From Mobula birostris (Eukaryota), in assembly GCF_030028105.1 (NCBI RefSeq), contig NC_092371.1, forward strand, positions 97,119,064 to 97,183,063: a stretch of DNA of 64,000 nt, read 5' to 3'. The position numbers were made by a program, and so were the translations under genes. This document shows positions 3,301-61,004 of the stretch, piece after piece (the first letter of the stretch is position 1; every line of letters begins with the position of its first letter). Below the pieces are notes generated by a model. That model did no database searches and was not told where the DNA came from. It saw nothing but the letters and a program-made list of their open reading frames with translations.

Positions 3301-4971
3301 CGTTTCTGCATTCTCTTTCCTACAATACTAACTACGTCCATTCACCAATTTTCTGTTTAAATCACATCTCCATTACGCGGGCATCTAAATTTGTGAGCTG
3401 ACCCACAGCTTGAAATGTATTGTTAATGAAAATATTCCTGTCATCCATCCCGAACATTTATTTTTGGACCGGCTGTCATTTATCTAAGCATAAGATAAAT
3501 GGCTTCCATTCCAATAAATAACTTAAAAGATAACTTTCAGGAGGATGAGAATACGGATTGTAGTCACGTCTTTCTAATTGGTTATACAAGTTGCTTTATC
3601 TCGAGAAGAAAAGATTATGAAAATGTCAACATTTCTCGATATTGTTACTGGGAGAATTCAATCCACCCGCACAAGCTGCATTTGCATTCCCCAGCTATTC
3701 CACTTTGCGTCTCTCCAAGTGTCCAGCAATGGAATTGGAACTTTCGGCACTCTTTGAATTTGCCAGACGCAGAATTCCAGAGCTCCAATGGGGTTGGTGA
3801 AGATAGAAGAAAAAAAGGAAGGGATAGATACATTACATTTTATCCGTTCGTGTTTCTTTTCTTTTTAAATTGTTTAAGTATTTAATTAATGTTTAATTTT
3901 GTAACTGTTAAGGATATTGAAGAATTTTAAGCATGTCTGAATAACAGAAAAATTCTAAAATGTTAAATAAATGTTTCTAAAATTTGATAGTTTGAAGTGA
4001 GCCATGCCCTTTGACAAAATCTTCAAGTGCAGTTCAATGGGCGACCCGTATTTTGGTCATTTTATCGACTTATCACAAAACCGAAAATTTTGCCAGACAA
4101 ACTACAATTGTGCACCTGCCGTGCAGTAATTCAAATGCTCCCCCACCCCCGCTCATAGTCGTTGTGGCGCGAAACTGCAATTGTCTTTTGCATAATATTA
4201 CTTTGAAGTGCCGCTCAGGTTTCAAGCCCTGTAAGAATTTCCTGCTCAAAAGAATGGTTGGTCCATGCAGCTGTGAAAAAAAAACAGACCCCCCCTATAG
4301 TCAGAGAAGGCAGTATCAGCGGTTTGCAGTCCAGAGCGACTGGTGAAAATTTCGTGAATGTATTTTCCCAGTTTCAATAAACCGTGTATGGATTTCAATA
4401 ATTAATTACAAACTTGCTATTACTAATCTTCTCTTATCGAGATAAAAGCACTTGTAAAATCAATTAAAAAGACGTGATTACAATCCGTATTCTCATCCTG
4501 CTGAAACTTATCTGTTAAGTTATTTATTGGAATGGAAGCCATTTATCTTATGGTTACGATATGGTTTTCTCAGACCTACCTACTATGGCCACGGTGTTCT
4601 ACATTTCATACTTAATCTATCATTATATAAACTTTACAAACTGATGTACAAATATCGCTTGCGCTTCACTGTTGTGAAGCCCGAAATAGCATTAGATAAT
4701 CAACCACCGTCAGATTGTATTTACTACATCTGGTTTGGACTATCATTTGCAATGTTTAAGATGTTTGAAACACGCGTTGTTATGTACCGTAAGCCGAAAT
4801 CACCTCGAATGAAACCTGTAGTTCTGAAGGACGCGAGCAAAAATATCATTGGTGCGAACTCTAATAAGTGCTGTTGTCCTCTGCTCCGCTGTTAATTACA
4901 ATTCTTCGGTATCCTTGAATATGAACAGCTGGAGGAAAACCATTTCCCATGAATAATGGAATTCTAACGTT

Positions 4972-5071
4972 GGTTCTGATGAAGAGTTTCGGTCCGAAAC
5001 TTCGACTGTTTACTCTTTTCTATAGACGCGGCCTGGCCTTTTGAATTCCTCCAGCATTTTGATTGTGTTAC
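4972..5071 (+). mobile_element. Short Penelope-like pLTR fragment with a degenerate hammerhead motif
   Basis: CTGATGAAGAGTTTCGGTCCGAAACTTCGACTG..., similar to 49538-49630; not present in units B-D. Confidence 0.6.
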
Positions 5072-5537
5072 TAAAATTGGCAATCGATTATGCCCACGAT
5101 GTTGAAATAAAGGATTGTTTCAATACGTATGTAAATTTCTCTGACAATTAATTGCACCACATGTACTGGTTGTAGCCATAGTGATTACAGTTTCTTCAAG
5201 TGAAAAATCTACTCAATAACTGACCCAACGTTAAGACGACGTGGTCTACTTTATTTCACCGAATGCCAATGTTTGATCATCATCACGACTGTTCGTGCAC
5301 ATCTTTGAAAACTAATGTATTGTCAGTCACATTGGGTAAGATAAAAAACTCCACCGTAGATTTTAGTTACCTTGGGACAAAGTTACTTTAGAATAAATGC
5401 AGTTTAAGAATAACCAGCAGGACGCAATGCATATTTTCTCCCGATTGGAAAATATGTTAGCTACAATCGAATATTTAATATCTGTACGTGACATTCATTT
5501 GTTTTATTTTAAAGAATCAGCGTATAAACATATTGTG

Positions 5538-8089: not shown

Positions 8090-9006
8090 AAGGAGTAATG
8101 ATCTTTCAATAATCACGAGATACTGGAATGGGTCCAGAGGACCGGAACATCGCAAATATTACTCCACTCTCTAAGAAGAAAGGGAGGCAAAATGCAGGAA
8201 ATTATGGGCCAGTTAGCCTGACGTCAGGTGTTGCCAAGATGCTAAAAGCCATTAGCAAGAACGAAATTTTGAGGTACTCGAAGGCACACGATAAAATAAG
8301 CCGAGGTCAGCATAGCTCCCTTAACGGGAAAACAAGGCTGACAAATCTACTGAGATTCCTTGAGATAGTAACAGGCAGGGCAGACAAATAAGAGTCAATG
8401 ATGTTGCTTACTTGCATTTTCAGAGGACCTTTGAGAAGGCGTCACACATAAGGTGGCTTTACGGGATAAGAGCCCATGGTATTACATCAACGATACAAGC
8501 ATGCATAGAGTACTGGTTGATTGGCAGGAGCAAAGCTAAAGATAATGGGGCCCTTTTCTGGCTGGCTGCCGGTGACGCGTGGTTTTCACATGGATCGGTG
8601 TTGGGTCTGCTACGTTTCATGCTAAATGTTTATTATCCGGATGACGGGATAGATGGCTTTGTGTTTGCATTTGATGCAAAGATAGATGGACGGGCAGGCA
8701 GTATCGAGGCAGAAAGAATCCCCAGAATGGTCGTGACGGTTAAGGGGAATTGACAAAGAAGTGGCAGACGGAATTTAGTGTAGGAAATTGTATGGTCATG
8801 CATATCGGCAGAAGGGATAAAGGTGTAGACATCTTTCTAAATAGGGACCGAATTAAGAGGTCAGAGGTGCAAAGGGATTTGGGAATCCTCGTGCAGGCTT
8901 CTCTAAAGGTTAATTTGCAGGTTGAGTCGGTGGTGAGGAAGACAAATGCAATGTTTGCATTCATTTCCAGAGAAGTAGAATATAAAAGCAAGGATGTAAT
9001 GCTGAG
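8090..9006 (+). mobile_element. Degenerate CR1 RT fragment in the J-C intron (paralogues at 17875-19430, 43890-45420, 58390-59860)
   Basis: GNYGPVSLTS, FDAKIDG (FADD relic) and LGILVQASLK motifs; truncated at 9006. Confidence 0.75.
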
Positions 9007-11769
9007 AAAGCATCGACTCTGAAAGAGGTCTTGGACAGAAGGTAGGGAGACCCCAATAACCTTCTCTGCTCCCCTAACCACCCTCTGCGAGGCTTTTTTG
9101 TCGACAGCACTGCAGCTGGAGTACCAGGTTGTGATGCAAAAGGTCAGCACACCCTCAACCACGCCTCTGTAGAATGTAGTTAAGATGTTAGTGGGGAGTG
9201 ATGCTTGTTTAAGCTTCCTCAGAAAGTGCAATCTCTGCTGGGCCCGTTTCACAATCCCAGTAGTGTTCCTGGACCAGGTCAGATTGTACGAGATCTGCAC
9301 CCCAAGGAACTTGATGTTTTCCACTCTCTCCACTGTGGAGCCGCTGATGCTGAGGGGTGTATGCTCAGGGTGAGACCGTCTGAAATTGACGATCATCTCC
9401 TTGTTTTTGGTGACATTAAGCATTAAGTTGCTATCACTGCAGCAGTTCTCTAGATGTTTGACTTCTTCCCTGTATATTGTTTCATCACTTTTGCTGATGA
9501 GCCCCACCACTATAGTATCATCAGCAAATTTAATGATCAGGTTCTCCTTGAATCTTGCTGCACAGTCATGTGTTAGCAGTGTAAACCGCAATGGGCTAAG
9601 CACACAGCCTCATGGGGATCCAGTGCTCAGCGTGATGGAGTCAGAGATGTTCCTGCCAACATGGACTGACTGTGGTCTCCCTGTCAAGAAATCCAGAATC
9701 CAGCGACACATGGCCGTGTTAAGGCCAAGCAGCGACAGTTTCTCCACTAGTCTCTGCGGGATAATGGTATTGAACGCTGAACTGAAATCAATGTACAGGA
9801 TTCTGGCATAAGTGTCTTTGTTGTCCAAGTGAGAGAGAACTGTGTGCAGTGTGGTGAATATTGCCTCCTCCGTAGAACGATTTGGACGATAAGCAAAATG
9901 TAGAGGATCCAGCGATGAGGGGAGGCTGGCTGTGATATGAGGCTTGACAAACCATTCAAAACATTTCATCACTCTGGGGGCCAGCGCAACGGGAGGGTAA
10001 TCATTCAGACAGGCTACAACTGATTTCTTTGCTCTAGGGATGATTGTGGAGGTTTTGAAGCATCTGGGGACAATGGCTTGACGAAGGGAGATGTTGATAA
10101 TGTCTGCACATCAGCGCATTCCTTGAGCACACGTCCAGGGATGTTGTCGGGACCTCCCGCTTTTCGTGGGTTGACCCTGGCAGGGGTCCTCCTTGTTTGC
10201 TCTGGATCAATAATTGGAGCCGGTTGGTCGGATGGTAAAAAGGGACTGGATCTCCCCCTTGCTGTAGTGTTCGATGCTTCGAAGCGTGCAAAGAAATTGT
10301 TAAGCCTGTCTGGAAGAGAGGCGTCGCTGTCATCAGTTTTCTGCCTGATCTTGTAGTCTGTCAGAGCTTTAATTCCCTGCCACATCCGTCTGGCGTCACC
10401 TGTGTCACAGAAGTGTCCATGTATTTTGCCCGCGTAGGCCCTTTCTCTTTCCTGATCCCTAGTGAAAGCGCAGACCTGGCTGAGCGAAGCGCACTCCTGT
10501 CCCCCGATCTGTAGGCTGTGTCACGGGCCTTCAATAGTGAACGCACCTCTGTTGTCATCCATGGCTTTTTATAACCACGTGCGGTGAAGGTTTTCATCAT
10601 AGTGACATCCTCCGTGCATTTGGCTGTGTAGCTGATTATAGCCTCCGCATACTCCTCAATGTCTGTATGGCCGTCATAGGAGGCTGCTGTTTTGAATATC
10701 TCCCAGTCTGTGAGCAAAAAAAGTCTTGTAGTGCTGAGGCTGCTCCTTTTGGACAGACCCTTATCTCCCTTTTCTCTGCTCTCACACGTTTAAACAGTGG
10801 TTTATATGCTGGTGTTAACATGAAAGATATGTAGTCAGAGTGGCCAAGATGGGGGCGGGGGGCTGCTTTGTATGCCTGTGGTGTGTTGGTATAAACCAAG
10901 TCCAGTGTGTTGTCTTCCCTCGCTTTGAAATCCACATATTGCCGGAATTTGGGGAACACAGTCTTTCAGCTGGTGTGGTTAAAGTCCCCAGCAATCACCA
11001 CGAAGCTGTCAGGATTTGTAGTCAGTAGCTCACTGATGGCTTCATGTAGCCCTCCCAGTGCTTCGTTAGCATTAGCCTTAGCATTGGCACTGGGAGCTAC
11101 GTAAACAGCTGCCACAAGCATGATGGTGAATTCCCTCGGCAGTTAGAACGGCCGGCATTTCACAATGAGAAATTCATCCAGCGGTGAGCAGCCTTTAGCA
11201 GCTACTGTAGCGTTCACACATCAGTCTTTGTTTAAATAAACACACAGACCTCCTGCTCGGCTCTTACCGGAGCTAGCTGCTCTTTGTCGGCACGAAACGA
11301 TGTCATTCCCTCGAGCTGTATCGCCGCGTCCGGTATGTTGTCATGGAGCCAGGATTCCATTAAGACATACACACAGCAGTCTTTAAATTCCTTGCGTGTT
11401 TCTCTCAGCAGACGCAGCTCATCCAGCCTGTTGTCGATGGAGAGCAGGAGGGGCAGCACCGCTGGCCTGGTGGGGATAGCTTTTAGCCTAGCATGGATGC
11501 CGGCCCTCTTACCCCTCCTCTGTCTTCTCTCACAGTGCTTTCGCTTCCTCCTTCCTCGGGAAGCAGCCGGCTTGGTAGCGGATAGTAGTCTGTAGCGGCG
11601 TAAACTGTCCATGTCACACCAGAACTCGGCAGTTTTTCCGACATAGTATGCCCTGATGTTAACGAGCATATTCCGACTGCATTGTTATGCGTCTAGGACA
11701 AACAGAACAAACACTAGAGACACTTATCACTCCCCGAGGGGCCGCTGCGTCCATGCGCGCCGCCATCTT
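9007..11769 (-). mobile_element. Rex1/Babar-clade non-LTR retrotransposon, 5'-complete, 3'-truncated, frameshifted
   Basis: APE start (DNRLDEL...CVYVLMESWL), then [22 protein letters not shown]-like [24 protein letters not shown] and KFADDTIVVGLIS. The 5' end reads AAGATGGCGGCGC; the ORF runs into CR1 sequence at about 9007. Confidence 0.85.
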
Positions 11770-20066: not shown

Positions 20067-20446
20067 TGTTGAAATTCGGTTTAGCTCCTCTCCCAGAGGT
20101 GAATATTGTGTGGTGCCAGACACCGCAGTAATAATCGGCGGCGTCCTCCCATTGCACCTTGGTGATGGTTAAGTGCATTTGAACAACAGGAATTCTGCAG
20201 ATGCTGGTTAAATGCATTTGGTTGCTCGATGAGTCCGTGGAACCGGTGAATCGATCTGCAATTCCCGATCCTCTCGTGGAGATCCATATCACACAAAGAC
20301 TGGGGCGCTGCCGGGTTTCTGCATGTACCAGCTCGTGTAGTAGCTGCCGATGATACCCCCTGACATGGTACAAATGATTTTCACGGTTCTACCCGGAGAC
20401 GCCAATACGAACGGAGACTGAATCAAAGTCATCTCCGCGTTTACAG
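20067..20446 (-). pseudogene. IGLV: Germline-joined VJ pseudogene, unit B
   Basis: EMTLIQSP...C...WYMQKPG, then TGA at 20289-20291, a 1-nt deletion in CDR2, a 39-nt insertion in FR3, FGXG changed to SGRG, and the J donor changed from GTAAGT to TAACTT. Confidence 0.92.
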
Positions 20447-21311: not shown

Positions 21312-22006
21312 TGTAGCCTCCCTGGCCACCCTCAGCGTCGCTCGGCTCGCTGACATCTAGGGAAACAGCCCTCGGCCCCGGCAAACTGGATAATAGGTTG
21401 TGTGGATGCTGTGTAATGTACCCCACCTGGCTCAAATAACAGACAATACACCAGATATGATTAAATGATTTACAGTTTATAGATATTACTGGAACTATAT
21501 AATTAATAGCGAATAAAATATAAAAGGAAAATAAAAGGCGCCACACTTATCAAAGTTCAATCTCTTCGTGCACAAAGAGTTGGAGCTCGGGACCCTTCTT
21601 CTTCACCCTGCGATCCCTCGGACCACCTCGACCGGCCGCCTGGGACCGACAACGGTGTTCGACCAGACGCTCCACACGAGTCCGACTCCGTCTCCACTCC
21701 TCGCCGAACGCTCCGCTCGGGGTCCGACCCCGTTAGCGGACTCACAGCACCTGGTTCATTCTCTGTCTCTCTCCCGCCTTCTACCTCAAAAACCCGCGCA
21801 TACAGATCTTCCAGATACACCAAAGTCATTACAACTATCCCAATTTGTTCGTAACATCCTCTTATCACCCTCTAACCCACAACAAGCTGCTAGCGCAAAA
21901 CTGTCTCAGCGTTTAACATAACAACGAAGCTTTCCCAAGTATAACATAACAAAGAAGCCATTTTAATTAGCCTACACAGTAACATAAAAGACGAAACCCC
22001 GTTACA
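21312..22006 (-). mobile_element. 3' LTR of a Gypsy-type element
   Basis: TGTAGC...GTTACA termini; polypurine tract (minus strand TGGTGGGGGGAGAG) abuts at 22007-22020. Confidence 0.8.
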
Positions 22007-24562
22007 CTCTCCCCCCACCAAATAAAGTCGTGTCCTCGTGACTTCTAAATAATTCGCCAACCAGTCCTGCAGACACACAACATACACATACACAGATACA
22101 CACAATGACAGTGCTCCCCAAACAATGGACCTTCCGCCCGTCCCACGGGCGGTACATAGGCCAACCTAGCTGGGAGCTTCTTAACCCTTACCTAAACCCA
22201 AAAGTCTCAGGCACTACTAGGGATACCTCGGGCCTGCTTGCCAAGTCCTCTTTCACTCAGGCCACCATTACAGCTCGGAGCCCCCTGTCCCGTGTCCGGG
22301 GCCCCGCTTCTTTTCCTTCCTGATCCTGCCGTAACTCAGACTGCCCACAGCTAGCCCTCCCCGCTACACCTGACTCAGTGCGAGAAGGACCAAAGGTCTC
22401 TTCCTCAATCACGGGGAAGTAAGCGAAAGGCAGCATGTACCACATGTGCAGCACATCATCCTTCGAATCTGTATTCTTCTTCATTCCCTCGATCAGTAGC
22501 TACTGTTTGAGCTTCTCCAAACTTAAACATTTAGCCGGGGTTACCCCTTCAGCCTCCTGCAGTCGAGACGTCAGCTTCTTCGGGGACTCCTTCAACTCTC
22601 TCCACAGCCTCAGCAGTTCTGACTCAGGGTTCTTGGCCATCTCAATCTGGGACGCAGTTACCCCACCAGCTTCTTCCACCCTGACCTGAAAAGCAGCAGT
22701 TAAAAGATGTTCAGCCTCCGGTTTTTTCTTCCTGATGACGTCTTCCAGGTCAACTTTCAGTTTTTCCACTTCATTTAAACCGTCGGTAGTCATCTTCAGG
22801 CTCCTTTCAAGCGTCCGCCTCCCTTTTCCGAGATCTGTCCTCCATTTCTTCACCTCCTCGGGAGTGTAGTCAAACTCCCCTCCCTGGGCTCTCGGTTTTC
22901 TGTTGGCCTTAGTCAGAACACTTCCTTGATCTTCTCCAACTTGTAAGTCTTCCAATCTTTTCAGGATCGACGTCTTGAGTTTCTGCTGATCCCTCCGAAG
23001 GTGGGTCATTGTTTCTTCTCGCTGGATTAATTCATCAGTACACGACCGCAGTGTCGGCTCGGAATTCCGTTGCTCCTTCTCCACGTTGATGAGCGTGAAT
23101 TCCAAGTCTGCAGTGGTCGTCCCACAAGTGCGGCACTCAGTCTCCGGCCGGCATTTCTGAGCACTCAGTTCAGCGGTGCAAATCCCCTATCTCCCCTGTG
23201 TCTCATTCAGATTGACGTCCTGGGTTTCCATCCCCAGGTCCACCAACGTCTGTTCCAACACTAGGATGTTCAACTGATATGTCGGGTCAATTTTCTCACA
23301 TTGCACCAAACTCCTCCGGCCAAAAACTCCTCCACACTTTACACTTCACTTCTGTCACCCGGGCTCAGCCACTGGCCTCGCTTCATAGTTTCCCCAGGCG
23401 AACCCAAGCTCTAGGCGGTCATCCACATACGCCAAAACTCCACACACCTTCACTTCCCCCATGGTCTTCCTCGTGCCCCGCGGGAAGGATGCAGGGGCTC
23501 CGGATATGCCCTTGGGCATCTTTTCGGATCGGAAGAATCCTAGGGAACTAATAACGGCCGTCGTCGGCTCGACAGCCGCACTCCTCGGGATCTGGCAACA
23601 TCCACTCCTCAGATCCAGCACATTAAACCACGTCGCATAATCCTCACACACGTCTTCCACGGCGCTAGAGTCCAGTTGCCGCGACCTCTCTCTCACAGAG
23701 GTGTCTTCAGCGGTCAACTCTCCTCCCTCGTGGTAGTTCGGAGCATCTACTAAGAGGGTCTCACCCTCAGCTACTTTCCCCAGGCCGTACCACCGCTGGC
23801 TCTTGTTTAAATTCGGTACCGGCTCAAGGCTGCTACACATGTCCTCAGAAGCAACTCGGCACGCTGGGTGCCCAGACAGTGGCCCCATGAACTCCAGGGT
23901 CATTAACCAATCATCGTCACTGGATCTCTACTGGCACTGGTACCCAAAATCTCCCGTGCCCTTGCGGTTGTAAAGGGTAAATGCTTCAGACACCGGTTGT
24001 AAAACGAACTGTACAACAACTTGACCTGTGCCCCGGGGTCGAGGATGGCTTTAGCATCGCTTCCCTCTATCCATTGCGACACCCTGGGGCGTGGTCCCTC
24101 TAAGCCTTCAGGAATAGTGTCCTTTCCTTTCGGAAGTTTATTGGTACATTGCTGGGAACGTGCTTCCCCAGAGACCTCAAGCCGTTCCCCACTGGGCCTC
24201 CACTAAGTTTCCCGACACCTCTCTGATCAGGTGAACAACTGAAGGAGGGGCTGATCCCCTGAAATGATCCCCCTGGAAATGCAAGCAATTTAGCCGCCCT
24301 CCTAGCCAGAGAAGACACACTGAAAACGTCCCCCCCCTCTTTCAAATAACTGACAGCTGTCACTACGGTGTAAGTGAACCTGACAGCTCTAACACCGTCA
24401 CCGGCCCGCCTCCTTAAACTTTCAACCAATCCCTGTCGCTCTGCCTCAACCGAGCACTGCCATCTAACAACTGACCGATCCGCTCCGCCCGCGTCTCGCA
24501 CGCCTCCGCCCCTCTTGGGGTGGACACTATCCCAAACACCAGGCAGAGCCTGCCAGAGCTAG
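22007..24562 (-). mobile_element. Internally deleted, non-autonomous Gypsy internal region (gag relic, degenerate RT, coiled-coil ORF 22500-23105); no 5' LTR
   Basis: Degenerate RT motifs [22 protein letters not shown] and LAYVDD in ORF 23355-23903. The whole insert is absent from unit D (compare 61715-61740). Confidence 0.75.
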
Positions 24563-25172
24563 AACACTTATTCGCAAGGCAAGTTGTTCACTGCACCTCG
24601 GTGCATGTAATCACAATTAAGCAATTTGAAAATTTACCAATTTATGACTGATTCACAGGTTCACTGTCCCTGACATTTGCACATTTCCACACAGCCCCAA
24701 ACTCTCTCCTCCCCCCCCCACACACACAAATGCAGAGGGGGCACATAAACCAACAGTGTATCAAAATGGGAAGAAGCGGCTGAAGTACTGTGGGCTTGAG
24801 GTTGCCATAGGCGGAAGTAGCTCAGGGCGAGAAGGGTTGCATCTGACCAGAAATACGAAGCGGTTAATTGATACAGGCGAACAGAAAGACTACTTTACAA
24901 CGAGTTGGTTATTGCGAGAAAAGTCTAACGTTATAAAGAAAATTGAGAAGGAATTTGAGTAGTGTCTCAGAGGCGTATCCACCTGTTATTTCTCAAATAT
25001 ATCTTGGATATTCCTACTCATATTTCTGCTATTCCGCACCCTCGTCTCCGAAGTGGAAAGTATGATCAATATAATCCACAGAATATTGCGTTAAACTGCT
25101 CGGGCTAAAGCTTTCCCGTGTTACATGTGAGGGAGGATAGGCAGGGGAAGAGAATGGGAGCACTCAGACCGA

Positions 25173-29324: not shown

Positions 29325-32300
29325 TTTTTTTGTACAGTAATTTATTTTTTTATTGACTTTCATCATCAAAAAAACATTTCCATCAGATATATTTTAGATA
29401 CTGTACAGACATATCATATAATCATATTTGTCACAAATCCCCACATAATATTTATCTGAGGTATACACTTATAGAAAGGAGAGGAAAGAAAGAACAATCA
29501 AAAGAAGAAAACTATGTGCAGAGTAGGAAGTGATCTTTTTTTACAACATATTAATTGAATTGTGAGAATAAAATCAGGCCTATGAGGTGTTATGTAGTTA
29601 AAACATTTTTCCAGTATGAATAAAATTGTTCCAACTTATGATTAACAGATGCTGTTATCTTCTCCATTTGGTAAATGTCCATTGTAATTTCCATCCATAC
29701 ATTTAAAGTTGGGCTCTCCTGTGATAACCATTTCCTGGTAAGGGTCTTTTTACCAGCCCCCAGCACTACATTCATTAAATATTTGTCTCTTTTCAACCAT
29801 TCTTGAGGTATATACCCAAAATATATGGTCTTACTCTCAAAGGGTATTTAACATTTAAAGATGTCTTGTAGGGCATTATGTATCCCAGTCCAATAGTCTT
29901 TGATAATAGGGCATTTCCAGAAAATATGATAATGATTTGCTTTTTGATTTCCACAATTTCTCCAGCAAACGGGGGGGTTACTATCATAATGGGATTTCTG
30001 AGAGGGTGTAATAAAATATCTTAACAAGTGTTTCCACCCGAACTCCCTCTATTTCTGTGAACTGGTACACTTACATTGATATCTCCATATTATTGCCCAG
30101 TCTTCCTCAGATATTATTACCTCTCCTTCCTTCTCCCATTTTGTTTTAATGTATGAAGTCGAATGTGTTTTAAGATTTGAGAAACACTTATACACACTTG
30201 AAATTATTCTACTACCGTTATCTGAACTATATGCTTTTCTAAATAGCTCTATCAGACATGAACTTGCCTTGGTTGCATTTTTAATCATCCTATTAACATA
30301 GTGTCACATCTGTAAATACCGATAAAAGTCTTGTTTTTCTAGTAAGTGTTTCTCTTTGAGCATTTCAAAACTGAACAGTGTTCCTTCTTTCATTATATTG
30401 CAAATAGCTGTTATTCCTTTAGCTGTCCAGTCCTTAAATCTAGCATCCAGTTTATTCGGCGTATAATCCGAGTCATATGCACACCATTTAAGAATTGCAA
30501 TGTCTCTCTCTAGTTTAAAACTATAATAGTTTTTCATATTCTTAAGTGTTCATTTCACCCACGGGTTCTCAATATTATTTACGTAACTTTGTAGGTTGTT
30601 ATCAGCCAAAATTGCCTGTATGTGGATGGAAGTATCCTCTCCTGAATGTTTTTCCATTGAGCGTTATATGATGGGTTGCACCAGCATATCATGGCTCTCA
30701 ACTGTGCTGCAAAATAATAATCTCTAAGAAAAGGTAGGCCCCATCCCCCCTTTTCCTTGGCTAATTGCAAAATTTTGAGATGAACCCTAGGCCTTTTACC
30801 TTGCCATATATATCTTGATGGCATCTCGTTCCGTTCATTGAATTGATTCTGGTTAATCTCTATTGGGAGGGTCTGAAAGGGATATAATAGTCTGGGCAGT
30901 ATATTCATTTTAATAGGTCCAATCCTTGAACTGAGACCAAGGAAAGGAATTAAGTTCCATCTTGTTCTACCTCCCTTATTTTTTAATATATATATAGGTT
31001 GATAATTGCATTCTGATGATTTTTCCAAATCTTTTGGCTCAACGGCTCCCAAATATTTGACGGACTCTGTTTGCCATGCCCAAAGATATCTACTTTCAAC
31101 TTCTCTTGGTGGGCTGCAGTTATATGAAAGTAGGTGGGTTTTATCTATGTTGATCTTGTATCCTGATAATTGGCCATATTGTTCAAAGGATTGCATCAAT
31201 TTAGGTAACGAGTATGTTGGTTGCCCTAGATAGATCAAAATGTCATCCGCGTAACAGGCCAATTTATGCTCTGTCCCTTTAATAGTAATTCCAATGATAT
31301 CTTCATTTTCTCTGATGAATTGAGATAATGGTTCCAGGTACAATGCGAAGAGTAGCGGTGACCATGCACAACTCTGTCTCGTGCCTCTTTCTAGGGTAAA
31401 ACTATTAGATAAATATCCATTGATTTTTATCCTGGCAGTAGGATTGTCGTATAGTGCCTGTATAGTTTTAATAATTGTGTCATGTAGACCAAATCTATGT
31501 AAAATCCTGTAAAGAAAACTCCAATTAACCGAGTCAAATGTCTTTTCAGCATCTACGCTTATCACTATTGCTTCAATTTCATTTTTTTATATGATCCATA
31601 ATGTGAAGTGTCCTTCGTATGTCGTCTTGTGTTTGGCGTTGTTGTATAAAACCCGTCTGATCATTATGTATCAGTGTGGGTAGAAACTCTTCTAATTGCT
31701 TGGCCTTGATGCAGGTAAATATTCTATAATCCACATTAAGAACAGATATTGGTCTAAATGATCCACATTCCATTTTATCCTTGTCTTCTTTCGGTATAGA
31801 TGAGATTATCGCCTCCTTCCAGCTGGGTGGCATCTGCACCTTTCTTAGGGCCCAGTTCAGTGTGGGGAGTAAAATAGGAATTAACTCACTTCTAAACTCT
31901 TTATACCTCTCTGCCGTATATCCATCTGATCCTGGTGACTTGCTTAATTTAAGCATACTAATTGTAGTTTTTAGTTCAGCTTCAGTTATGTCAGCAGTCA
32001 TCGTTCTATTTTGTTCTTTGCTAAAAGTGGTTCACTCTAACGAATTCAGGAAGCTGTCGATTTGGGTTATGCTTCCCCCTGGAACTTTGGAATATAGAGT
32101 TTTGTAAAACATTTCAAAAACTTCTTGAATTTCACAGCTTATTTTTTTTTATCACTTTTGTTCTTAGATCCCTAATTCTATGAATTGTATATTCTACTAT
32201 CTTTTTTTCAGTTCCCACGCCAGTATTTTCATAGAATTAGATCCACTTTCATAGTGTCTCTGTTTCAGAAACATTAATTTTTTTCTAATTTCTTGTGTAG

Positions 32301-34701
32301 CCAAATTATTAATTTCATTCCCAATTTTTAAAATTTCCCCTAGTGTATCCTGTGCCAAACTCAATTTGTGCTTTTTTTCTAGTTCCTTCAGCTCATTTTG
32401 TAATTCCCATAATGTTTTATTCCTTATTTTTTCTTATATGAAGATATCGCTATAATTTTCCCTCTTAAGACATCTTTCAGAGTATCCCATAGAATGGGAG
32501 GTGAAACTTCTCCATTATCATTGAATTCTAAGCAAAGACCAATTTCTTGTTCAATTTGTTCCTTTGAGTAGACTTGAATTTCGTTTGCAAATAGTATTCT
32601 TTGGTTGTAGGTCAAAATCAACAGATAAATATATAGGTGCATGGTTACTTACATCTATTGCCCAAATTTCACAGGTGATTATTTTGTCTCTATCTTTCCC
32701 AAATGTTATGAAATAGTCCATTCTTGCGCATACAGAATGGGGGGGGGGGGTGCAGAATAATGCGTGTAATCCCTTCTGTTTGGGAAAAGTTCCCTCCATA
32801 TATCAATTAGACCAACATCCTCAAAAAAGAGTGTTAACTTTCTTATGTAAGGTCTTTGTTCCATAAGTTTGTCTATTGGAAGTGACTAACTTTGGTTGTA
32901 ATTGTAAAATTAAGTCTCTCCTACATATTAAGGGACCTTCTGATTCCGTTACCATAATATTAGTAATTTTCTGGAAGAAACTAATATCACTTCCTGGGGG
33001 TGCGTATATATTCAATAACGTAACTGGATTTCCAACTATATTCCTCCTTACCAGAATATATCTGCCCTCCTTATCTCCCATTTCGAATACTTTTTCAAAA
33101 TTTAGCTTGCTTGGGATGAGAAAAGCAACTCCTCTTCTATGTCCTGATTTATATGAGGAGAAAAACAAATTAGTGAAGCCCATTCTCTTTAATTTTCCAT
33201 GCTCATTATCACTTAAGTGAGTTTCCTGTAAATATACTACATGGGCTTGTTCTTTTTTCATTTTGGATAGAATTTTACTGCGCTTGACTGGATTCAACGG
33301 CCCATTGACATTAAAAGAAATGAATTTTACTTTTTCCTTAGCCATGTGTATTTATCTGTTAGTATATCATTGAAATTTGCAGAATAAAACTTTGTCGATC
33401 TACTCCCTGAACAAATAAAAGACAAGAAACGCGAATAATAATAAAAAAGGTAACGAAGATGTGATTCCAAGGCTGGGGTCTCTAGATGACCCTGGGTTGA
33501 GCTAGAAGAAACTTCTAGCCGTGGGGGATAGCCCCTCCTACCTGTGAGTTGAGGGCCCCCGCTGCAGTACCTATAAATGTAAGTAAAAAAGTCTATGTCC
33601 ATTACACGGAAATGATTTCCCTGTGTATTCCTCCCATGTATATCTTCTCATTTAGGTGGGGAAAAAGGAATGAATGAAAGAATTTTTAAAAAAGTGAGTT
33701 AAATAAAATCGGGATAACTGCTCAGCCAGACTTTCCCTTGGTTTGACCACCCTAATGGGCAGTCCTCTGTTCTTCATGTCTGTGGTCGCTCCTTCCACCG
33801 TCTGATAAAGTCGTATCCTTTCTTGGTGAAATACCCTCAGTTTAGCAGGGTACGGGGTTTGGAATTTAATCTTTTCTTGCTTTAATATTCGTTTTGCTTT
33901 GGAATATTCCTTCCATTTCTGTAGGACCGCCGGGGGGCGGGGAGTAATCACGATCTAAGTATATTAACTTCTCGTTCCAAAAAACCCTCTTCTTACCCCA
34001 TGCCCTTCGTAGAATCTCCGCCTTGCTCTTGAACTAAGTACTATTGAGCGCGGCTTACTTTCTCTGTGTCCGAGACGCCGCGGGGCGAGCGAATGATGAG
34101 CTCTCTAAGTTTCAATTTCCATAGCCTGGGGAATCTCCAGCGCTTCCCGCAGCAACTCTTCTACGAACTCCGTCATCGACAATCCCTCCGCTCCTTCGGG
34201 AACATTATAAATCCAGATATTTTTCGCGATCTTCCCTCCTGGTCAAGCAATTTACTTTCCTGTTGATTTAATATTTTTATCGTCTTACTTACTATCTGTT
34301 CCACGTTGTGCACGCGATTTTCCACCTTCTTAATTCGAGTCTCTGCCACCGCTATTTTCTGATTGCCGTTGGCGAGCTCTGACTTTATATCATTTTGTTG
34401 CTGTTTTATATCTTTTTGGACTTCCCTATCTGTTCCAGAATCCTTATCATATTTGCCGCTTCGCCTGCACAAGGCCCAGCTTCAGCTTCGCCGCCACGGG
34501 CACGTGTGTGCGAGCCGCGCGTTGTACCTCTCTCTTCCATAGGCTCCGTAGTGGTGCTTTTTTATCTCCACTATTTTCCCCCATTCTTGCCCCCCTTATC
34601 AATTCAGATATTTTCGAAAGATCTTATATTTGATGGATTTTCAGTGCAAAATATGCGGTTTTTCTAGAGCACTATTGATTAACGATGACGTCACCCGAAC
34701 T
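29325..34701 (-). mobile_element. Full-length L1/Tx1-clade LINE (5377 bp): ORF1 about 34470-33650, ORF2 about 33345-29590, inactivated
   Basis: ORF1 C-terminus FQTPYPAKLRVF; APE SFNVNG...YLQETHL; RT KSPGSDG, FRPISVLN, CYADDIL; T-rich tail at the left end. 15-bp TSD CGTAC(A/T)GCCATTTGA at 29310-29324 and 34702-34716; empty site at 46774-46788. Confidence 0.93.
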
Positions 34702-48579: not shown

Positions 48580-49283
48580 GCAGGTACAGGGTTCTGAGTT
48601 GGATGATCAGCCATGATCATACTGAATGGCGGTGCTGGCTCGAAGGGCCGAATGGCCTACTCCTGCACCTATTTTCTATGTTTCTCGGTTTCTATATTAT
48701 TTCTGTATTTGAATTCTTGGGTTTTTTCTGCACTCTAGAAACATTACCCATAGCTCACCCATTCAGAGTCTCAATATTCCTCTGGAGCTTTTTGACTTCC
48801 TTTTCGCAATTTAATTACCTATTTGTCTTCTTGTCATCAGTGAACTGGAAGGATCTGAAGTCTTTCACAGAATCTTAGATATATCATTCTAGAGAATCGT
48901 CTCTTTATGTCTGCACTTCAGTTTTTGCCAGGCAATCAGTTTTCTATCCATGCCAGTACGTTATCACCTATTATTCTGCCCTCACTCAAGTGTTCTCCCC
49001 GCTTCCTTAACCTAGACAGACAGAGAACTCCATTCCCGGAGGAGCTGTAGTTAGAGACGGTTTTATCATTCACTAACGCGTTACAGTACGCAGATGTAAA
49101 AGGACAGTTAATCTCGGCGTTCCTGCGAAAGGCAGATTCAAATATTGACTGAAATTCCTGCGATTTCTAATAAGTGTCTCTAATGAAGGGATGAGCATAC
49201 AAGCGATTATATAATGGCCGAGCTGATGACGAAAGCTACCGACCTTGCATTATTCTGGAAAGCGATAATAACAAGCATATGAC

Positions 49284-49675
49284 AACACACATCAACGTTG
49301 CTGGAGAACGCACGTTTCAGGCCGAGACCCTTCGTCAGGACTAATATCCTCTGGGTTCCCCCCTCCCCTTGTCTTTCTCCCTGGACCTCCTGACCCATGA
49401 TCCTCTCATATCCCCTTTGCCAATCACCTGTCCAGCTCTTGGCTCCATCTCTCCCTCTCCTGTCTTCTCCCATCATTTTGGATCTCCCCCTCCCCCTCCA
49501 CTTTCAAATCTCTTACTAACTCTTCCTTCAGTTAGTCCTGACGAAGGGTCTCGGCCTGAAACGTCGACTGTACCTCTTCCTAAAGATGCTGCCTGGCCTG
49601 CTGCGTTCACCAGCAACTTTGATGTGTGTTGCTTGAATTTCCAGCATCTGCAGAATTCCTGCTGTTTGCGTTTTT
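49284..49675 (+). mobile_element. Penelope-like element fragment with an inverted partial pLTR at its 5' end
   Basis: Perfect 33-bp inverted repeat at 49312-49344 and 49532-49564; 16-bp TSD ATAACA(A/T)GCATATGAC at 49268-49283 and 49676-49691; hammerhead motif. Confidence 0.75.
49534..49569 (+). ncRNA. Minimal type I hammerhead ribozyme motif
   Basis: AGTC-CTGACGA-AGG(GTCTCGG)CCT-GAA-ACGT-C/GACT: helix I AGTC:GACT, complete catalytic core, 3-bp stem II, palindromic ACGT in place of helix III, GUC cleavage triplet. Confidence 0.8.
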
Positions 49676-51281
49676 ATAACATGCATATGACTTCTTAGTT
49701 TTGGAAGAAATGATCTCATTTCCGATCCACAATATAAACCATTACAGAGGCAGCAATAGCTCTTGGATGTTCCCAGGTTTAGATATTTCAAAGAAAGACG
49801 GGGAGGCAGTTAAAAGATGTGGAGGAGTGGCATTGCCAATCAGGGAGAGTATCGCAGCTACAGAAAGGTAGGATGTCGTGGAGAGATTGTTTATGGAGTC
49901 ACTGTGGGTGGGATCAGAAATAAGAGCGGTTGTAATCACTGGGAGTGTTCTGCAGCGCACCCCAGCCCCAACAGGAACATCGAGGAATAGGTCGGCAGGT
50001 CGATTTTAGAAAGTTGCAAACACACACATTTCTCTAATAATGATTGGCACAGCCTACATGCAAAAGATTTGGACAGGACAGAATTTGATAGGTGCGCCCA
50101 AGAAGGATTCCTGAATATGTGGATAGGCCAACTAGAAGAGAGGCCTTACTGGATCTAGAGCTAGCCAATAGAACAGGTCAGGTGTCAGATTGCTCGTGGG
50201 TGATCACAACTCCCTGATTTACCATAGCCTTGGAGAGGGATAAGAGCAGACGGCATTGAAGGAGAGGGAATTATGATGCTGTTAGGCAGGAACTTGTGAG
50301 CAGAAATTGGGAACTAATGTACGCCGGGAAATGAAGATGGGAATGTGGACGTTGTGTAGGGAGCACGAATGGGGATCTGGGTAGGGTTCTCCCAATTGGA
50401 CATAGATGGTAGTCTGAAGGAAGCATGGTTGACAAGAGATGTGAAGCATCCCGTCAAGAGGATAAAAGAAGATCACTTAATGTTTATGAAGCAAAGATCA
50501 GATAGGGCTCTAGACAGATACAAAGTAGTTAGGAAGGAGCTGAGGAATGGATTTAGGTGAGCTAGGAGGGATTGGCTAGTATGATTAAGGAAAACCTCAA
50601 GACGCTCTACAGGAAGGCGAAGAACAGAGGGATGAATAGATTGAGTAAAACAAAAGGAACCATGTGCTTGGAGTCGGAGGAGATTGAGGAGGTATTTAAT
50701 GAATAGTTTTCTTCAGTATTCACCACTTGCGTATGGACAGCATAAAACAGGCTGACATGTATAGAACATGTGACGGTAAGAAAGAGGATATTCTCGAACT
50801 TTTGAAAAAAATACATAAGCCCCTGAGGCCAAATGGGGTATACCCTGGTTACTATGGGAAGCGAGGGAAGGGAATGTTCTCTCTTGGTGATATCTGTCAG
50901 TAGCCACTGGAAATGTACCAGAAGATTGGAGGGTCTCAAACGTTATAACTTTGTTGAAGAAAGGGATTAGAGATAACCCTGGGAATTATAGACCAGTGAG
51001 CATCATGTCAGTGGTGGTCAAACTTTGAAAATGATTCTTAAAGGCAGGATCTGGGAGCATTTGGAGAAGCATACTCTGATTACATACAACACGGCTTTGT
51101 GAGTTACAGTTCAGGTCTCACGAACCTGATTGACTTTTTCGGGAAAGTGACTCAACAAATTGATAAAAGTAGAGCGGTAGATGTGACGTACATGGATGTT
51201 AGTAAGTCGTTCCTATATTGTGTGCTGCTTGGGACACCTTCCTACCTTCAGCAAAGATGTCAACAAAATTGAAAGAGTACC

Positions 51282-52256
51282 AGTGGATGTGGTATATTTG
51301 GATTTTCAAAAGGCTTTTGACAAGGCCCCACACAGGAGATTAGTGTGCAAACTTAAAGCACACGGTATTGGGGGTAAGGTATTGATGTGGATAGAGAATT
51401 GGTTGGCAGACAGGAGGCAAAGAGTGGGAATAAACGGGACCTTTTTAGAATGGCAGGCAGTGACTAGTGGGGTACCGCAAGGCTCAGTGCTGGGACCCCA
51501 GTTCTGTACAATATATATTAATGACTTGGATGAGGGAATTAAATGCAGCATCTCCAAGTTTGCGGATGACACGAAGCTGGGCGGCAGTGTTAGCTGTGAG
51601 GAAGATGCTAAGAGGACGCAGGGTGACTTGGATAGGTTAGGTGAGTGGGCAAATTCATGGCAGATGCAATTTAATGTGGATAAATGTGAGGTTATCCACT
51701 TCGGTGGCAAAAACAGGAAAACAGATTACTATCTGAATGGTGGCTGATTGGGAAAAGGGGAGGTGCAAAGAGAACTGGGTGTCATTATACACCAGTCATT
51801 GAAAGTGGGCATGCAGGTACAGCAGGCAGTGAAAAAGGCGAATGGGATGCTAGCATTCAAAGCAAGAGGATTCGAGTACAGGAGCAGGGAGGTACTACTG
51901 CAGTTGTACAAGAACTTGGTGAGACCACACCTGGAGTATTGTGTGCAGTTTTGGTCCCCTAATCTGAGGAAAGACATCCTTGCCATAGAAGGGAGTACAA
52001 AGAAGGTGCACCAGATTGATTCCTGGGATGGCAGGACTTTCAATTGATGAAAGACTGGATCGACTAGGCTTATACTCGTTGGAATTTAGAAGATTGAAGG
52101 GGGATCTTATTGAAACGTATAAAATCCTAAGGCATTGGGCAGGCTAGATGCGGGAAGTTTGTTCCCGATGTTGGGGAAGTGCAGAACGCGGGGTTACAGT
52201 TTGTGGATAAAGGGGAAGCCTTTTAGGACCGAGATGAGGAAAAAACTTCTTCACAC
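51282..52256 (+). mobile_element. Young CR1 RT fragment specific to unit D
   Basis: [45 protein letters not shown]. Host sequence resumes at a more distal homologous position, implying an associated deletion. Confidence 0.88.
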
Positions 52257-56030: not shown

Positions 56031-56353
56031 TTACATACAGCTGGATCGCGCGATGTTTGTTTGAAATGGGGTTGCCTGAGACTCGTGTTTAACCACACAG
56101 GAGTAATGCTCGTGTGAGTTCCAGTCTGAGGCTGGCAGAGTCAGGTAACTGCTCGCACTGAACGTGTTGTCCTTGTCCTGCTGGATCCGGCTGGTCTCAA
56201 CGCCATTCCTTCTCGTACTGCCGTCCACCGTCCACTCGATATTCACAGCAGCCGGATTAAACCCGCTCACCAAACACACCAGGGTGGCGGTGCCCTGTCC
56301 CTGAATTTCCTCCGCAGACGGTCGGAGAACGGATACAGCGGGTTTTCGCGGAT
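56031..56353 (-). CDS. IGLC: Ig lambda-like (type II/NS3) light chain constant exon, unit D
   Basis: TTACAG|AT acceptor, phase 1, compatible with the J donor; 323-nt intact C1-set domain ending SSCM*; AATAAA at 55996-56001. Confidence 0.95.
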
Positions 56354-58389
56354 CTGTAAGTAGAAAGAAGTGCAGGGAAATGAATTATTAATTGATATAA
56401 ATTGGAATCAAACTTTGTCTTTTTTTTTGTATTTGCGATTTTACAACCGTAAAAGTCAGAACGCGGACACAACTGAATCTCATTAACGCATTTTGATCTT
56501 CCACAAAGACATCAAAGCCAAAAAACATCATGGCCATTAGAAATAGCTACAATGTAAAAGAAAGAGAAGGATTTTTAAAGAACAGCAAAATTCAAAGCAA
56601 TGAAATAACGAATTCCGATGGAATGGGAAAACAAAATCCGATTGTACAGGCTTCTGGACAATAGCGTACAGAACCCATCTATTCGGCTGCATTGCTTCCC
56701 GCATCGTTATCGTAACTGCAACTCAGAACCACCGCTTCTACTGCAAGGCGAATTCAGGCACTGAGATCATGAAAGCCAAGAAACCCATGAACGTCAGTGT
56801 TTAATTCCCTGGCAAACATGCTGATGTTTAATCCAAATTTCAATATATCGAGATTGCTGAAGAGAGTTCGTCCGAAATTTCGATCGCTTTAAGTCACAAT
56901 TCACACATGCATTGATATACCTGGAGTAGTTTTGCTTTGCAGATCAAAGAAAATAATATTACTCTTAAATGTGTTTTGTCCTGTTGTGGACTTGGATTTC
57001 AGAGGTTGAGCCAATTGTTCTAAGGCCGAGGTAGAATATGAGGTACAGATTTCAACGGTAGCAAGTTTTGCCGTTTAGGTTTAGGATATGTCACCATACC
57101 GTTGAATGACCAGCCGACCCCAGCTTTGCCTTTGCGTGATTAATTCAATACGAAATGCTAATGCACGTTATCATGAAAGATGAGTCACGAAATCCAATTA
57201 CTCTAGCATCACTCAGAGGAAAGAAGAAATTTCTGAGACTGAATTACTTGGAATTGACAGCCAGTGTGCATTGCTGTTAACCCAAGCCAGTGCCAAGAGT
57301 TCTGCGCTTCATCATGAAATACTCTCCAATATACATAAGATATACTATATACATCCCGCGATACCCTGATCCAATCTGATGTAATCATCCTATAGTTAAT
57401 ATCGTGACAGATTATTGACATGTTCCATGATGTTAAAATCGTAAAGACAGGAATCATAGAACCAACAAGAAACCCCGAAAGAGATTTGGAAGAGCGCGTG
57501 GCAAAACTCCGAAATGTCGTCGCAGCTATTTTTACGTAAAAATCAAGAAATGAGGCAGTGGATTTGATTGACATACTGTGCCTTTGTCTCTCCTCCTCGG
57601 AGATGCAACAATTCGCCGCAGTAAAGGAGGGAATGTGAATGGCTAAAAATCATGGAAATATTTTAATCGGAATAAATAATACAAGTTAAAGTTGTATACA
57701 TGGATTTTTTAGTTTTTAGTCCCACAATTAATTCCGAAAGGGTTGTTTGGACCGGGATAATACACACTGAAAGAAAACCCGATAACCACTCTCAGAGGAC
57801 TATGAGATCCAGAAGGATGTGGATATCTTAGTCACGGTTTTGATAATGATTTTTTTTCATAAATTTGAAAAGTTGAACCCATTCACACAATGAGATATCA
57901 AGACTACAGAACAGAATTTACAAAGAGATCATTTTACTGTCACATCTCGACGGAAAGCGCGGCGGCAAGACAGAGAAGTTAAAGAGTGATTTTCCAGTGT
58001 TTCAGACCTCAGAGTGGTTATTCAAGGAGAAATCACTCAGTACTGTAATGATTGGATATCCAAAAATTAGAAGGAAGCAAATACTCAGTGGACTGTGGCA
58101 CTGGAGAGTTTTGAAATGCAAACAAAAAGGTGGGCCGAGTGATAATTTGATATTAAAGCGGAGACACATACACTGAGACGTTGCAGAAGGTCAAACAAAC
58201 TGGTGAGGCTGAGGTGGGCTCTGGGATGGGGTCGTGATGAAGACGAATTTGGGAGAAGCTAGAACGGGGCACCAGAATCTTGATCGGTTAATAGGTTTAG
58301 AAAAAGAGGAGCTAAAGTAAACGTGAAAAGATCAAGTTGAGCAAACAGAGATCGAAATTAGGCATAGATGGAAATTAAACACAAGTGAG

Positions 58390-59860: not shown

Positions 59861-60516
59861 TTATGTAAGTAGAAATTCTCTATTGCAATTCGTTTACATT
59901 CACAGCTCTGCTCTTGTCCCCATGAAGCTTCAGGTTCAGGATAAAATTTATTGGCAGTCAACTGTATACACGTATATGGTCAAACATAGCAACGTTCTTG
60001 GAGACCAAGGTGCACAACACTGTACATATAACTCAAGCACAACAATATAGTAATATTAGCATAAATAATAAAAAAAATAACAAAATGCATTCAGGACGAT
60101 TGGCATTCAGATCCCTCATATAAGCACTTGCTGGCTCTAAACACGACCTTACCTCTGCTATCTAATGGAAAACCTCACAGTTGTGAATATATTTTAATAA
60201 ATCACTTCTCTGTTCCCTGGGAAACTTCTAAGGAAACCTCGCTAACAGCAAGTAGCATGTATTCACGAAGCTATTTAAAAAATCTTACTTCAATGAACTC
60301 AGGTTTTTTAGAAAATAGTTTTCAGCTAAATTAAGTAACACTACCAAGCAAAGAAGATGCATATGTGCTAGCTTTCTGCCTGCGGTATTGTAGAGCTGCA
60401 ATGGGAAGCGGTCTGTAAACAGGTTCGGAGAACAGATAACATTATTCCAAGGTACAAACGAAAGAAATAACAAACAAAATTTAAACGCGATCTCAGCCCA
60501 CCAAATATTAACTTAC

Positions 60517-60864
60517 TGTTGAAATTCAGTCTGGTTCCTCTCCCAAAGGTGAATCTGTATATGCTATTGTCCCAGACACCACAGTAATAATCGGCGGCGT
60601 CCTGCCATTGCACGTTGGTGATGGTTAAAAGCATTTGGTTGCTCGATGAGTCCGTGGAACCGGTGAATCGATCTGGAATTCCTGATCCTCTCGTGGAGCT
60701 TCCATACAACACAAACACTGGGGCGCTGCCGGGTTTCTGCATGTACCAGCTCCTGTAGTAGCTGCCGATGCTGCCCCCTGACATGGTACAAATGATTTTC
60801 ACGGTTCTACCCGGAGACGCCGATACAGACGGAGATTGAGTCAAAGTCATCTCCGCGTTTGCAG
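60517..60864 (-). CDS. IGLV: Germline-joined VJ exon of an Ig lambda-like (type II/NS3) light chain, intact
   Basis: CCAG|CT acceptor; [54 protein letters not shown]; A|GTAAGT donor; no RSS or spacer between V and J. Confidence 0.95.
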
Positions 60865-60955
60865 CTGGCGAAAATAACAAACAATTATTTAAAAACCTTA
60901 AGTAAAATACACAGCAGAAAGGACAGTATTGGCAAAGATTAAGCATTCTACTTAC

Positions 60956-61004
60956 TGAACAAACAGAAAACAAGCGCGGCTAGAACCTGGACCCATTTAG
61001 CCAT
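60956..61004 (-). CDS. Leader exon ([16 protein letters not shown]) of the unit D light chain
   Basis: ATG at 61004; hydrophobic signal core; A|GTAAGT donor; 91-nt intron. Spliced CDS 49+348+323 = 720 nt (239 aa plus stop). Confidence 0.92.

Follow-up and report, generated by a model that had tools for sequence, protein, structure and literature searches.

The window analyzed here, a stretch of 64,000 nucleotides from Mobula birostris (NC_092371.1, positions 97,119,064 to 97,183,063 of the forward strand), contains immunoglobulin light-chain exons, remnants of several retroelements, and a short insertion that carries a hammerhead ribozyme motif. The light-chain gene lies on the minus strand and is represented by a V-set open reading frame (ORF) at 60371-60979, which shares 99% identity with a lambda-like light chain of Mobula birostris, and a C1-set exon at 56034-56384, the V and C exons having been searched separately by reference. 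The hammerhead motif is located 6.5 kb 3' of this gene, measured from the C1-set exon, and on the opposite strand, which agrees with the position downstream of the gene and antisense to it that had been reported in the first-pass annotation of this DNA. Other retroelement remnants were observed around the immunoglobulin clusters, at 21500-24600 (-), 30582-33351 (-), 8743-9609 (-), and 51187-51744 (+). They include a gypsy- or retrovirus-like reverse transcriptase (RT) that contains YVDD, a LINE that has both AP endonuclease and RT, and additional fragments of RTs, and none of these surrounding remnants was of Penelope type by Pfam.

The insertion occupies positions 49284-49675 (392 bp) and is bracketed by a 16-nt direct repeat (49268-49283 and 49676-49691). 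Its parts, and two further pieces of the same family within the window, are as follows.

49268..49283, no strand: left target-site duplication, 16 bp, ATAACAAGCATATGAC; 15/16 match to 49676-49691
49284..49344, minus strand: inverted 5'-truncated arm; it joins the reverse complements of 49603-49631 and 49532-49564, in this order
49345..49533, plus strand: 5' portion of the direct copy, rich in pyrimidines and presumed to be pLTR (sequence; contig depth)
49534..49569, plus strand: minimal type-I hammerhead motif (sequence, descriptor, isolated fold with stem II GGGU/GCCU)
49570..49631, plus strand: element body 3' of the hammerhead (alignment), ending where the inverted arm and the copy near 5079 end
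49632..49675, plus strand: 44-bp tail extension at one end only (alignment), absent from the inverted arm and from the old copy
49676..49691, no strand: right target-site duplication, ATAACATGCATATGAC, by direct-repeat match
4967..5079, plus strand: old copy, 74-75% identity (nhmmer E 5.7e-33; alignment)
20182..20206, minus strand: tail-only stub, 24/25 match to 49642-49666

The direct copy amounts to 331 bp, the inverted arm to 61 bp, and the tail to 44 bp, and the two 3' ends of the insert (49631 and 49675) lie 66 and 110 nt past residue C17 of the hammerhead. The arm is complementary to the direct copy in two segments: 49312-49344 pairs with 49532-49564 at all 33 of 33 nt (100%), and 49283-49312 pairs with 49602-49631 at 28 of 30 positions (93%). 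Between these segments the arm lacks 38 nt (49565-49602) and with them C17 and the 3' arm of helix I; read on the minus strand, the partial copy has G at the C17 position, which is its one mismatch, and no GACU. The earlier description of an inverted partial copy at 49312-49344, which has lost C17 and one side of helix I and can still pair perfectly with the core over 33 bp, is confirmed. As plus-strand RNA, this inverted neighbor is the complement of a hammerhead and not a hammerhead.

The minimal type-I hammerhead motif was read directly from the sequence of the plus strand at 49534-49569, and its elements, all on the plus strand and all assigned by sequence, are given below in the standard numbering.

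49534-49537, plus strand: helix I, 5' arm, AGUC
49538-49544, plus strand: core C3-A9, CUGACGA
49545, plus strand: additional A after A9
49546-49557, plus strand: stem II region
49558-49560, plus strand: G12 A13 A14, GAA
49561-49564, plus strand: palindrome ACGU (A15.1 C15.2 G16.2 U16.1), without a loop
49565, plus strand: C17
49566-49569, plus strand: helix I, 3' arm, GACU

Every position of the invariant catalytic core is present (C3 U4 G5 A6 N7 G8 A9, G12 A13 A14, A15.1-U16.1, and H17), and helix I comprises four base pairs (AGUC/GACU) and a fifth pair, U49533.G49570. The invariant residues, the AGTC/GACT pairing of helix I, and the ACGT palindrome that had been claimed for this site are confirmed by the sequence and by a descriptor search. 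This descriptor comprised CUGANGA, a stem II of at least 3 bp, GAAA, palindromic 15.2/16.2, U16.1, H17, and a helix I of at least 4 bp; it matched the window once, at 49534-49569, and matched none of 300 dinucleotide-preserving shuffles, and, by a rough calculation, about 4e-4 matches per window would be expected by chance. On each strand of the window the 28-nt core string was found a single time, against a chance expectation of 0.00. By standard hammerhead numbering, cleavage is predicted between C17 (49565) and G1.1 (49566), which coincides with the site after 49565 on plus-strand RNA that was proposed at first reading.

No match to the Rfam hammerhead models (types I/II/III, HH9, and HH10) was obtained at the gathering score in the whole window, or at E <= 10 over 49000-50000. 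Since 15.2 and 16.2 are not joined by a loop and helix III is thus not closed, the silence of these models on 49534-49569 is to be expected, and the null result is uninformative here for the same reason; the canonical hammerhead of the Rfam types has three closed helices, and this motif does not. A palindromic 15.2-16.2 without helix III or loop 3 is a feature of the minimal hammerheads of Penelope-like elements (PLEs), as are the short helix I and the nucleotide after A9 (A49545), which is unpaired in the minimum-energy stem II.

Stem II can be formed in two registers. The register that was originally given, AGG/CCU, is valid (-2.2 kcal/mol), but a second one exists, in which A49545 is bulged and GGGU pairs with GCCU, including a G10.1.U11.1 wobble (-2.5 kcal/mol). 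Position 11.1 (49557) is U in both, so that the pair is either G.U (with A49545 bulged) or A-U, and the G10.1-C11.1 pair is absent. The description of the motif as a complete minimal hammerhead is accordingly right for the core, which has all invariant residues, and overstated in view of the 10.1-11.1 pair, which is not G-C. The inverted arm also has U at 11.1, while the old copy (at 4976) has C there; since U is found in the inverted arm too, the source RNA already carried it. A single double change (G-C to A-U) between the two readable copies fits one register of stem II and not the other.

The structure of the insertion is that of a PLE-type event. Craig et al. (PMC8557442) listed 5' truncation, an adjoining inverted 5'-truncated copy, and a one-sided tail of 30-40 bp as traits of PLE insertions, and the insert at 49284-49675 shows all of them together with a target-site duplication, which argues for a PLE-type insertion. 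The inverted and 5'-truncated copy adjoins the direct one, the tail is at one end only, and the duplication flanks both. Tandem head-to-tail hammerhead units, as in non-LTR retrozymes, are not present in the insert, which holds a single intact motif whose sole close neighbor is an inverted partial copy. A Pfam scan of the window's 150 longest stop-to-stop ORFs found no GIY-YIG endonuclease and no PLE RT, and the RTs that are present in the window belong to LINE and gypsy-like elements. The membership of the insert in the PLEs is thus assigned by its architecture, and only by it; together with the features shared with published PLE hammerheads, the insertion hallmarks bear out the Penelope-like carrier that had been proposed. 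PLEs are already known from cartilaginous fish in the literature, and a literature search found no paper describing the ray family or its motif sequence. On these grounds, the insert is very probably an old, truncated, dead-on-arrival copy of an abundant PLE of rays, with the hammerhead located just upstream of the 3' end of the element.

Two further candidates were tried and rejected. A second hammerhead that would cut at the start of the stub (GUU|A at 49533/34) has no space for helix I and no matching core. The tail of the insert was considered as the start of a PLE ORF; only this copy keeps the frame open, which in the family consensus runs into a stop.

The abundance of the family was examined by aligning the contigs of four public sequencing runs to 48700-50300 (1,601 letters). 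The contigs came from the source species (X1), a relative that is diverged by about 3% (X5), a third organism (X9), and a presumed RNA run. Summed contig depth, which is not a copy number, was 8.5-16 on the unique flanks of the insert, 0.5-2.8 million over 49294-49509, and 4.7-8.3 million over 49510-49671, and it collapsed past 49675; the highest depth was found at 49564-49617. The rise of depth from 5' to 3' is a gradient of 5' truncation, and the same pattern was seen in the three organisms (X1, X5, and X9). The scale of these depths and the presence of three pieces in 64 kb indicate a family of very high copy number in the ray. In organisms B and C, the family contigs continue past 49675 into unrelated flanking sequence, which is AT-rich in B. 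Dozens of contigs join 49340-49344 straight to 49534-49538 and represent fold-back copies whose arms meet at the 5' edge of the hammerhead. It follows that the family has its core in the 3' end that bears the hammerhead and that fold-back copies are produced routinely. A few contigs of organism B contain head-to-tail joints that go back within the family sequence, for example from 49624 to 49538 and from 49661 to 49584, and these joints hint at short tandem arrays of the family elsewhere in the genome of organism B.

Searches in other collections gave negative results. A degenerate pattern of the hammerhead motif had no match in metagenome and viral contig collections, and three loci related to the LINE RT (assemblies GCA_977066275 and GCA_977066305) held no copy of the family. 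A protein word search with a spurious 109-aa ORF across the insert returned no candidates, and exact look-ups of the ORFs of the window returned no record.

The other pieces of the family in the window are more decayed or shorter. The old copy at 4967-5079 has a CUGAUGA core with C at 11.1; its palindrome is broken (ACUU), it lacks the tail, and a clear target duplication was not seen around it. The tail-only stub at 20182-20206 is flanked by a 14-nt duplication, CAAATGCAYTTAAC, at approximately 20207-20220 and 20168-20181, and it sits within FR3 of a light-chain V pseudogene. This V pseudogene was also observed to have an upstream TGA and a frameshift. A highly decayed hammerhead-like remnant, CTGA-AGAG...CCGAAATTTCGAT, was noticed at 56855-56888 on the plus strand as a weak match (E 0.05-0.2); it falls in the interval that separates the V exon from the C exon in the intact light-chain gene.

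The age of the insertion was approached through the relative. At position 49274 the close relative (organism B) reads T, with which both copies of the duplication are identical (16/16); the A in the window of M. birostris therefore arose after insertion. At the two junctions, contigs of the relative that start in the unique flank cover 24 and 27 nt of the insert, lengths that fall short of the 31-letter bridging rule, and the contigs of the source species itself show the same pattern. The shared junctions and the T at 49274 suggest that the insertion predates the split of the two species, and, on this reading of the aligned sequences, the insertion at 49284-49675 is probably older than the split and the duplication was probably perfect when it was made.

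Whether this copy could act as a ribozyme was considered from its predicted folding. The isolated motif folds best (-12.2 kcal/mol) when the core's GACG is paired to the CGUC of the cleavage site, in competition with the ribozyme-competent fold (-7.6 kcal/mol), and the isolated motif folds no better than its shuffles (z = -0.24). The helix III duplex of a dimer, ACGU/ACGU, is worth -3.1 kcal/mol only, which is so weak that helix III would require a partner in cis or one held by protein. For the complete insert, a folding energy of -135 kcal/mol (z = -11.6) was calculated, the motif being enclosed in a long stem, and the duplex of the arms reaches -99.5 kcal/mol, compared with -7.6 kcal/mol for the ribozyme-competent fold. 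A transcript spanning both arms would, by these energies, lock the hammerhead in a long hairpin, and the suggestion of an inactive hairpin in a transcript of the whole insert was thermodynamically correct. Since many fold-back copies exist, this hairpin is a by-product of the insertion mechanism and not a designed switch. The presumed RNA run contained family contigs on both strands and had zero depth on the unique flanks of the insert. Because of the U at 11.1, the competing monomer fold, the lack of a tandem partner, the hairpin, the absence of RNA from the flanks, and the weak activity published for this class, the motif at 49534-49569 is probably inert at its locus, a relic without a function of its own.

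The 5' edge of the hammerhead deserves a separate description. Just before the motif, TACTAAC (49514-49520), a 9-nt pyrimidine run, and cAG (49530-49531) were observed, an arrangement that resembles a splice acceptor. The same edge also fits an initiator, with CCAGTCC compared with YYANWYY. In other subfamilies, a pyrimidine tract ending in ...CC precedes the AG at 49534-49535 that opens helix I (four runs), in a 30-nt upstream consensus whose agreement is low (0.39-0.47). No splice donor is visible within the 187 nt upstream that are present in the insert. In X1, 746 and 298 contigs begin their alignment at 49534 and 49535, respectively, and a splice acceptor or a transcription start at this edge could explain, judging from its sequence, the many copies that start at 49534-49536. 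A cDNA made from an internal RT start back to the 5' end of such an RNA would be a stub of 100-140 bp.

The 38-nt gap of the inverted arm, at junction 49311-49313, was noted to begin exactly at C17, with 1-nt microhomology and a possible AACGU/GCGUU stem that joins its ends. As a single case, this gap could result from a skip of RT over a hairpin, from a later deletion, or from a jump onto the end of a cleaved RNA. A gap that starts at C17 would be expected if RT jumped onto the 3' end produced by hammerhead cleavage of an RNA, and the copy starts and fold-back centers at the edge together with this gap have been considered as a record, in genomic copies, of the processing of a Penelope template RNA in vivo. 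Such a record is regarded as quite improbable. If C17 junctions were to recur throughout the genome, they would constitute the first in vivo footprint of PLE hammerhead cleavage during retrotransposition.

The following course of events is proposed for the insertion at 49284-49675. The endonuclease of the element would cut the target with a stagger of 16 bp, and both DNA ends would then prime reverse transcription on the RNA of the element, at internal sites that match 49631 and 49675. Joining of the two cDNAs would yield the inverted 61-bp arm, the 331-bp direct copy, and the one-sided 44-bp tail. In active master elements, as far as can be judged from the literature, the hammerhead is probably weak, dependent on dimers or on protein, and would act on multimeric transcripts of the element.

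Other explanations of the insert were weighed against that of a truncated PLE copy. It may be a non-autonomous derivative of PLE termini, similar to a retrozyme or a SINE, that is mobilized in trans and perhaps makes small circular RNAs. The very many short copies that start at the 5' edge of the hammerhead (the 746 and 298 contigs of X1 at 49534/35) and the head-to-tail joints that go back in some contigs (e.g., from 49624 to 49538) would agree with such a derivative, and a 2026 preprint derives the animal non-LTR retrozymes from PLE pLTRs and reports them in the one chondrichthyan that it sampled. However, the copy at 49284-49675 is not tandem and holds one intact hammerhead, the depth declines gradually upstream as is expected for 5' truncation of a longer element, and internal RT initiation near the 5' end of the RNA explains the short stubs equally well. 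A derivative of this kind is thus considered unlikely, although it is the least unlikely of the alternatives. A further alternative, in which short motifs came together by chance into a hammerhead-like pattern and no ribozyme relic exists, has next to no probability. It could draw on the lack of a match to the Rfam covariance models and on the isolated fold (z = -0.24), but the descriptor matched 0 of 300 shuffles at an expectation of about 4e-4 per window, the same motif occupies the same place in the old copy of 75% identity, no part of the family is more heavily repeated, in three organisms, than the one that contains it, and it corresponds point by point to a published motif class (PMC4209133).

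A local function has also been considered, either as a hairpin-gated ribozyme that processes or ends antisense transcripts of the light chain, or as a hairpin that feeds small-RNA pathways. The hairpin and the motif do occur together on one strand, antisense to the immunoglobulin genes, and the insertion is apparently common to the relative that is diverged by about 3%, but any old neutral insertion would also be found in the relative. Moreover, the same fold-back architecture recurs throughout the genome, the unique flanks have no RNA contig at all, the 10.1-11.1 pair is non-consensus, and no dimer partner exists. The drift of the arms is approximately neutral, with 2 of 63 arm positions different, compared with a flank divergence of about 3% between the species. 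A function at this locus is therefore highly improbable, more so than the record of RNA processing discussed above, and because the copy number and density of the family are so high, the nearness of the motif to the light-chain gene is a matter of chance and is uninformative. A truncated and inert copy of an abundant ray PLE remains the preferred explanation.

The significance of the observation lies with the family. In manta rays there is a PLE family of very large size that has a minimal hammerhead motif, and a single decayed copy of so highly repeated a family is of little importance alone. The stubs, fold-backs, and tails of the family could be mined for the starts and ends of PLE reverse transcription and for any sign of hammerhead cutting in vivo. 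For the immunoglobulin locus, these elements are neutral litter, with one tail-only stub inside a V pseudogene.

The closest known systems are the minimal hammerheads (min-HHR) of metazoan PLEs, which were described by Cervera and De la Pena in 2014 (PMC4209133). The ray motif shares with them the type-I topology, the lack of a closed helix III, and a palindromic 15.1-16.1 that can pair only in a dimer (PMC4209133). It also shares a helix I of 4-5 bp, the absence of a defined loop 1, the additional nucleotide between A9 and 10.1, and the position on the sense strand near the 3' end of the element. In both cases the motifs are extremely numerous and are found mainly one at a time in truncated copies, and occasionally in close opposite-strand pairs. 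Two differences were found: stem II has 3-4 bp in the ray and 6-8 bp in the examples from Schistosoma and Drosophila, and the ray copy has U at 11.1 (G.U or A-U), whereas the G10.1-C11.1 pair is highly conserved in the PLE min-HHR (PMC4209133). The self-cleavage reported for PLE minimal hammerheads is poor, in dimers as well (PMC4209133). In Penelope of Drosophila virilis, a spliceosomal intron extends up to the 5' end of helix I (PMC4209133); similarly, helix I of the ray copy is preceded immediately by TACTAAC, the pyrimidine tract, and AG, which make up a candidate acceptor, and the family consensus also has a pyrimidine tract with AG at this edge.

The Poseidon element PAc of Anolis carolinensis offers a mechanistic comparison. 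Its protein cuts and extends both strands of the target, with internal initiation of RT (PMC11167929), and in PAc about 100-150 nt separate the hammerhead from the RT initiation sites downstream of it (PMC11167929). The ray hammerhead is similarly upstream of the ends that define the tail, C17 being 66 and 110 nt away from them, and a two-strand cut and extension like that of PAc would account for the inverted arm and the direct copy. Another point in common is that the family contigs of organism B enter AT-rich flank at the 3' end of the element. The PAc hammerhead cleaved in vitro and needed the protein of the element for this, it was dispensable for insertion in vitro, and its cleavage left no detectable ends in RNA-seq (PMC11167929). 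The ORF of PAc starts inside the hammerhead; in the ray copy no ORF start is evident.

Retrozymes, newt satellite 2, and Schistosoma Sm-alpha resemble the ray insert in having type-I hammerheads with a weak palindromic helix III that favors dimers (PMC7229834; 10.64898/2026.07.22.740005), and the link to PLE terminal repeats is common to the animal non-LTR retrozymes and the ray insert. In contrast, retrozymes and satellite repeats are organized in tandem arrays with units bounded by the cleavage site and give circular RNAs, while the ray insert is dispersed and single and has a target-site duplication; their hammerheads have a real helix III with a loop and are detected by Rfam, and the ray motif is not. 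The ray family is a further case of the motif class that has been known since 2014 in the PLEs of fishes and other animals.
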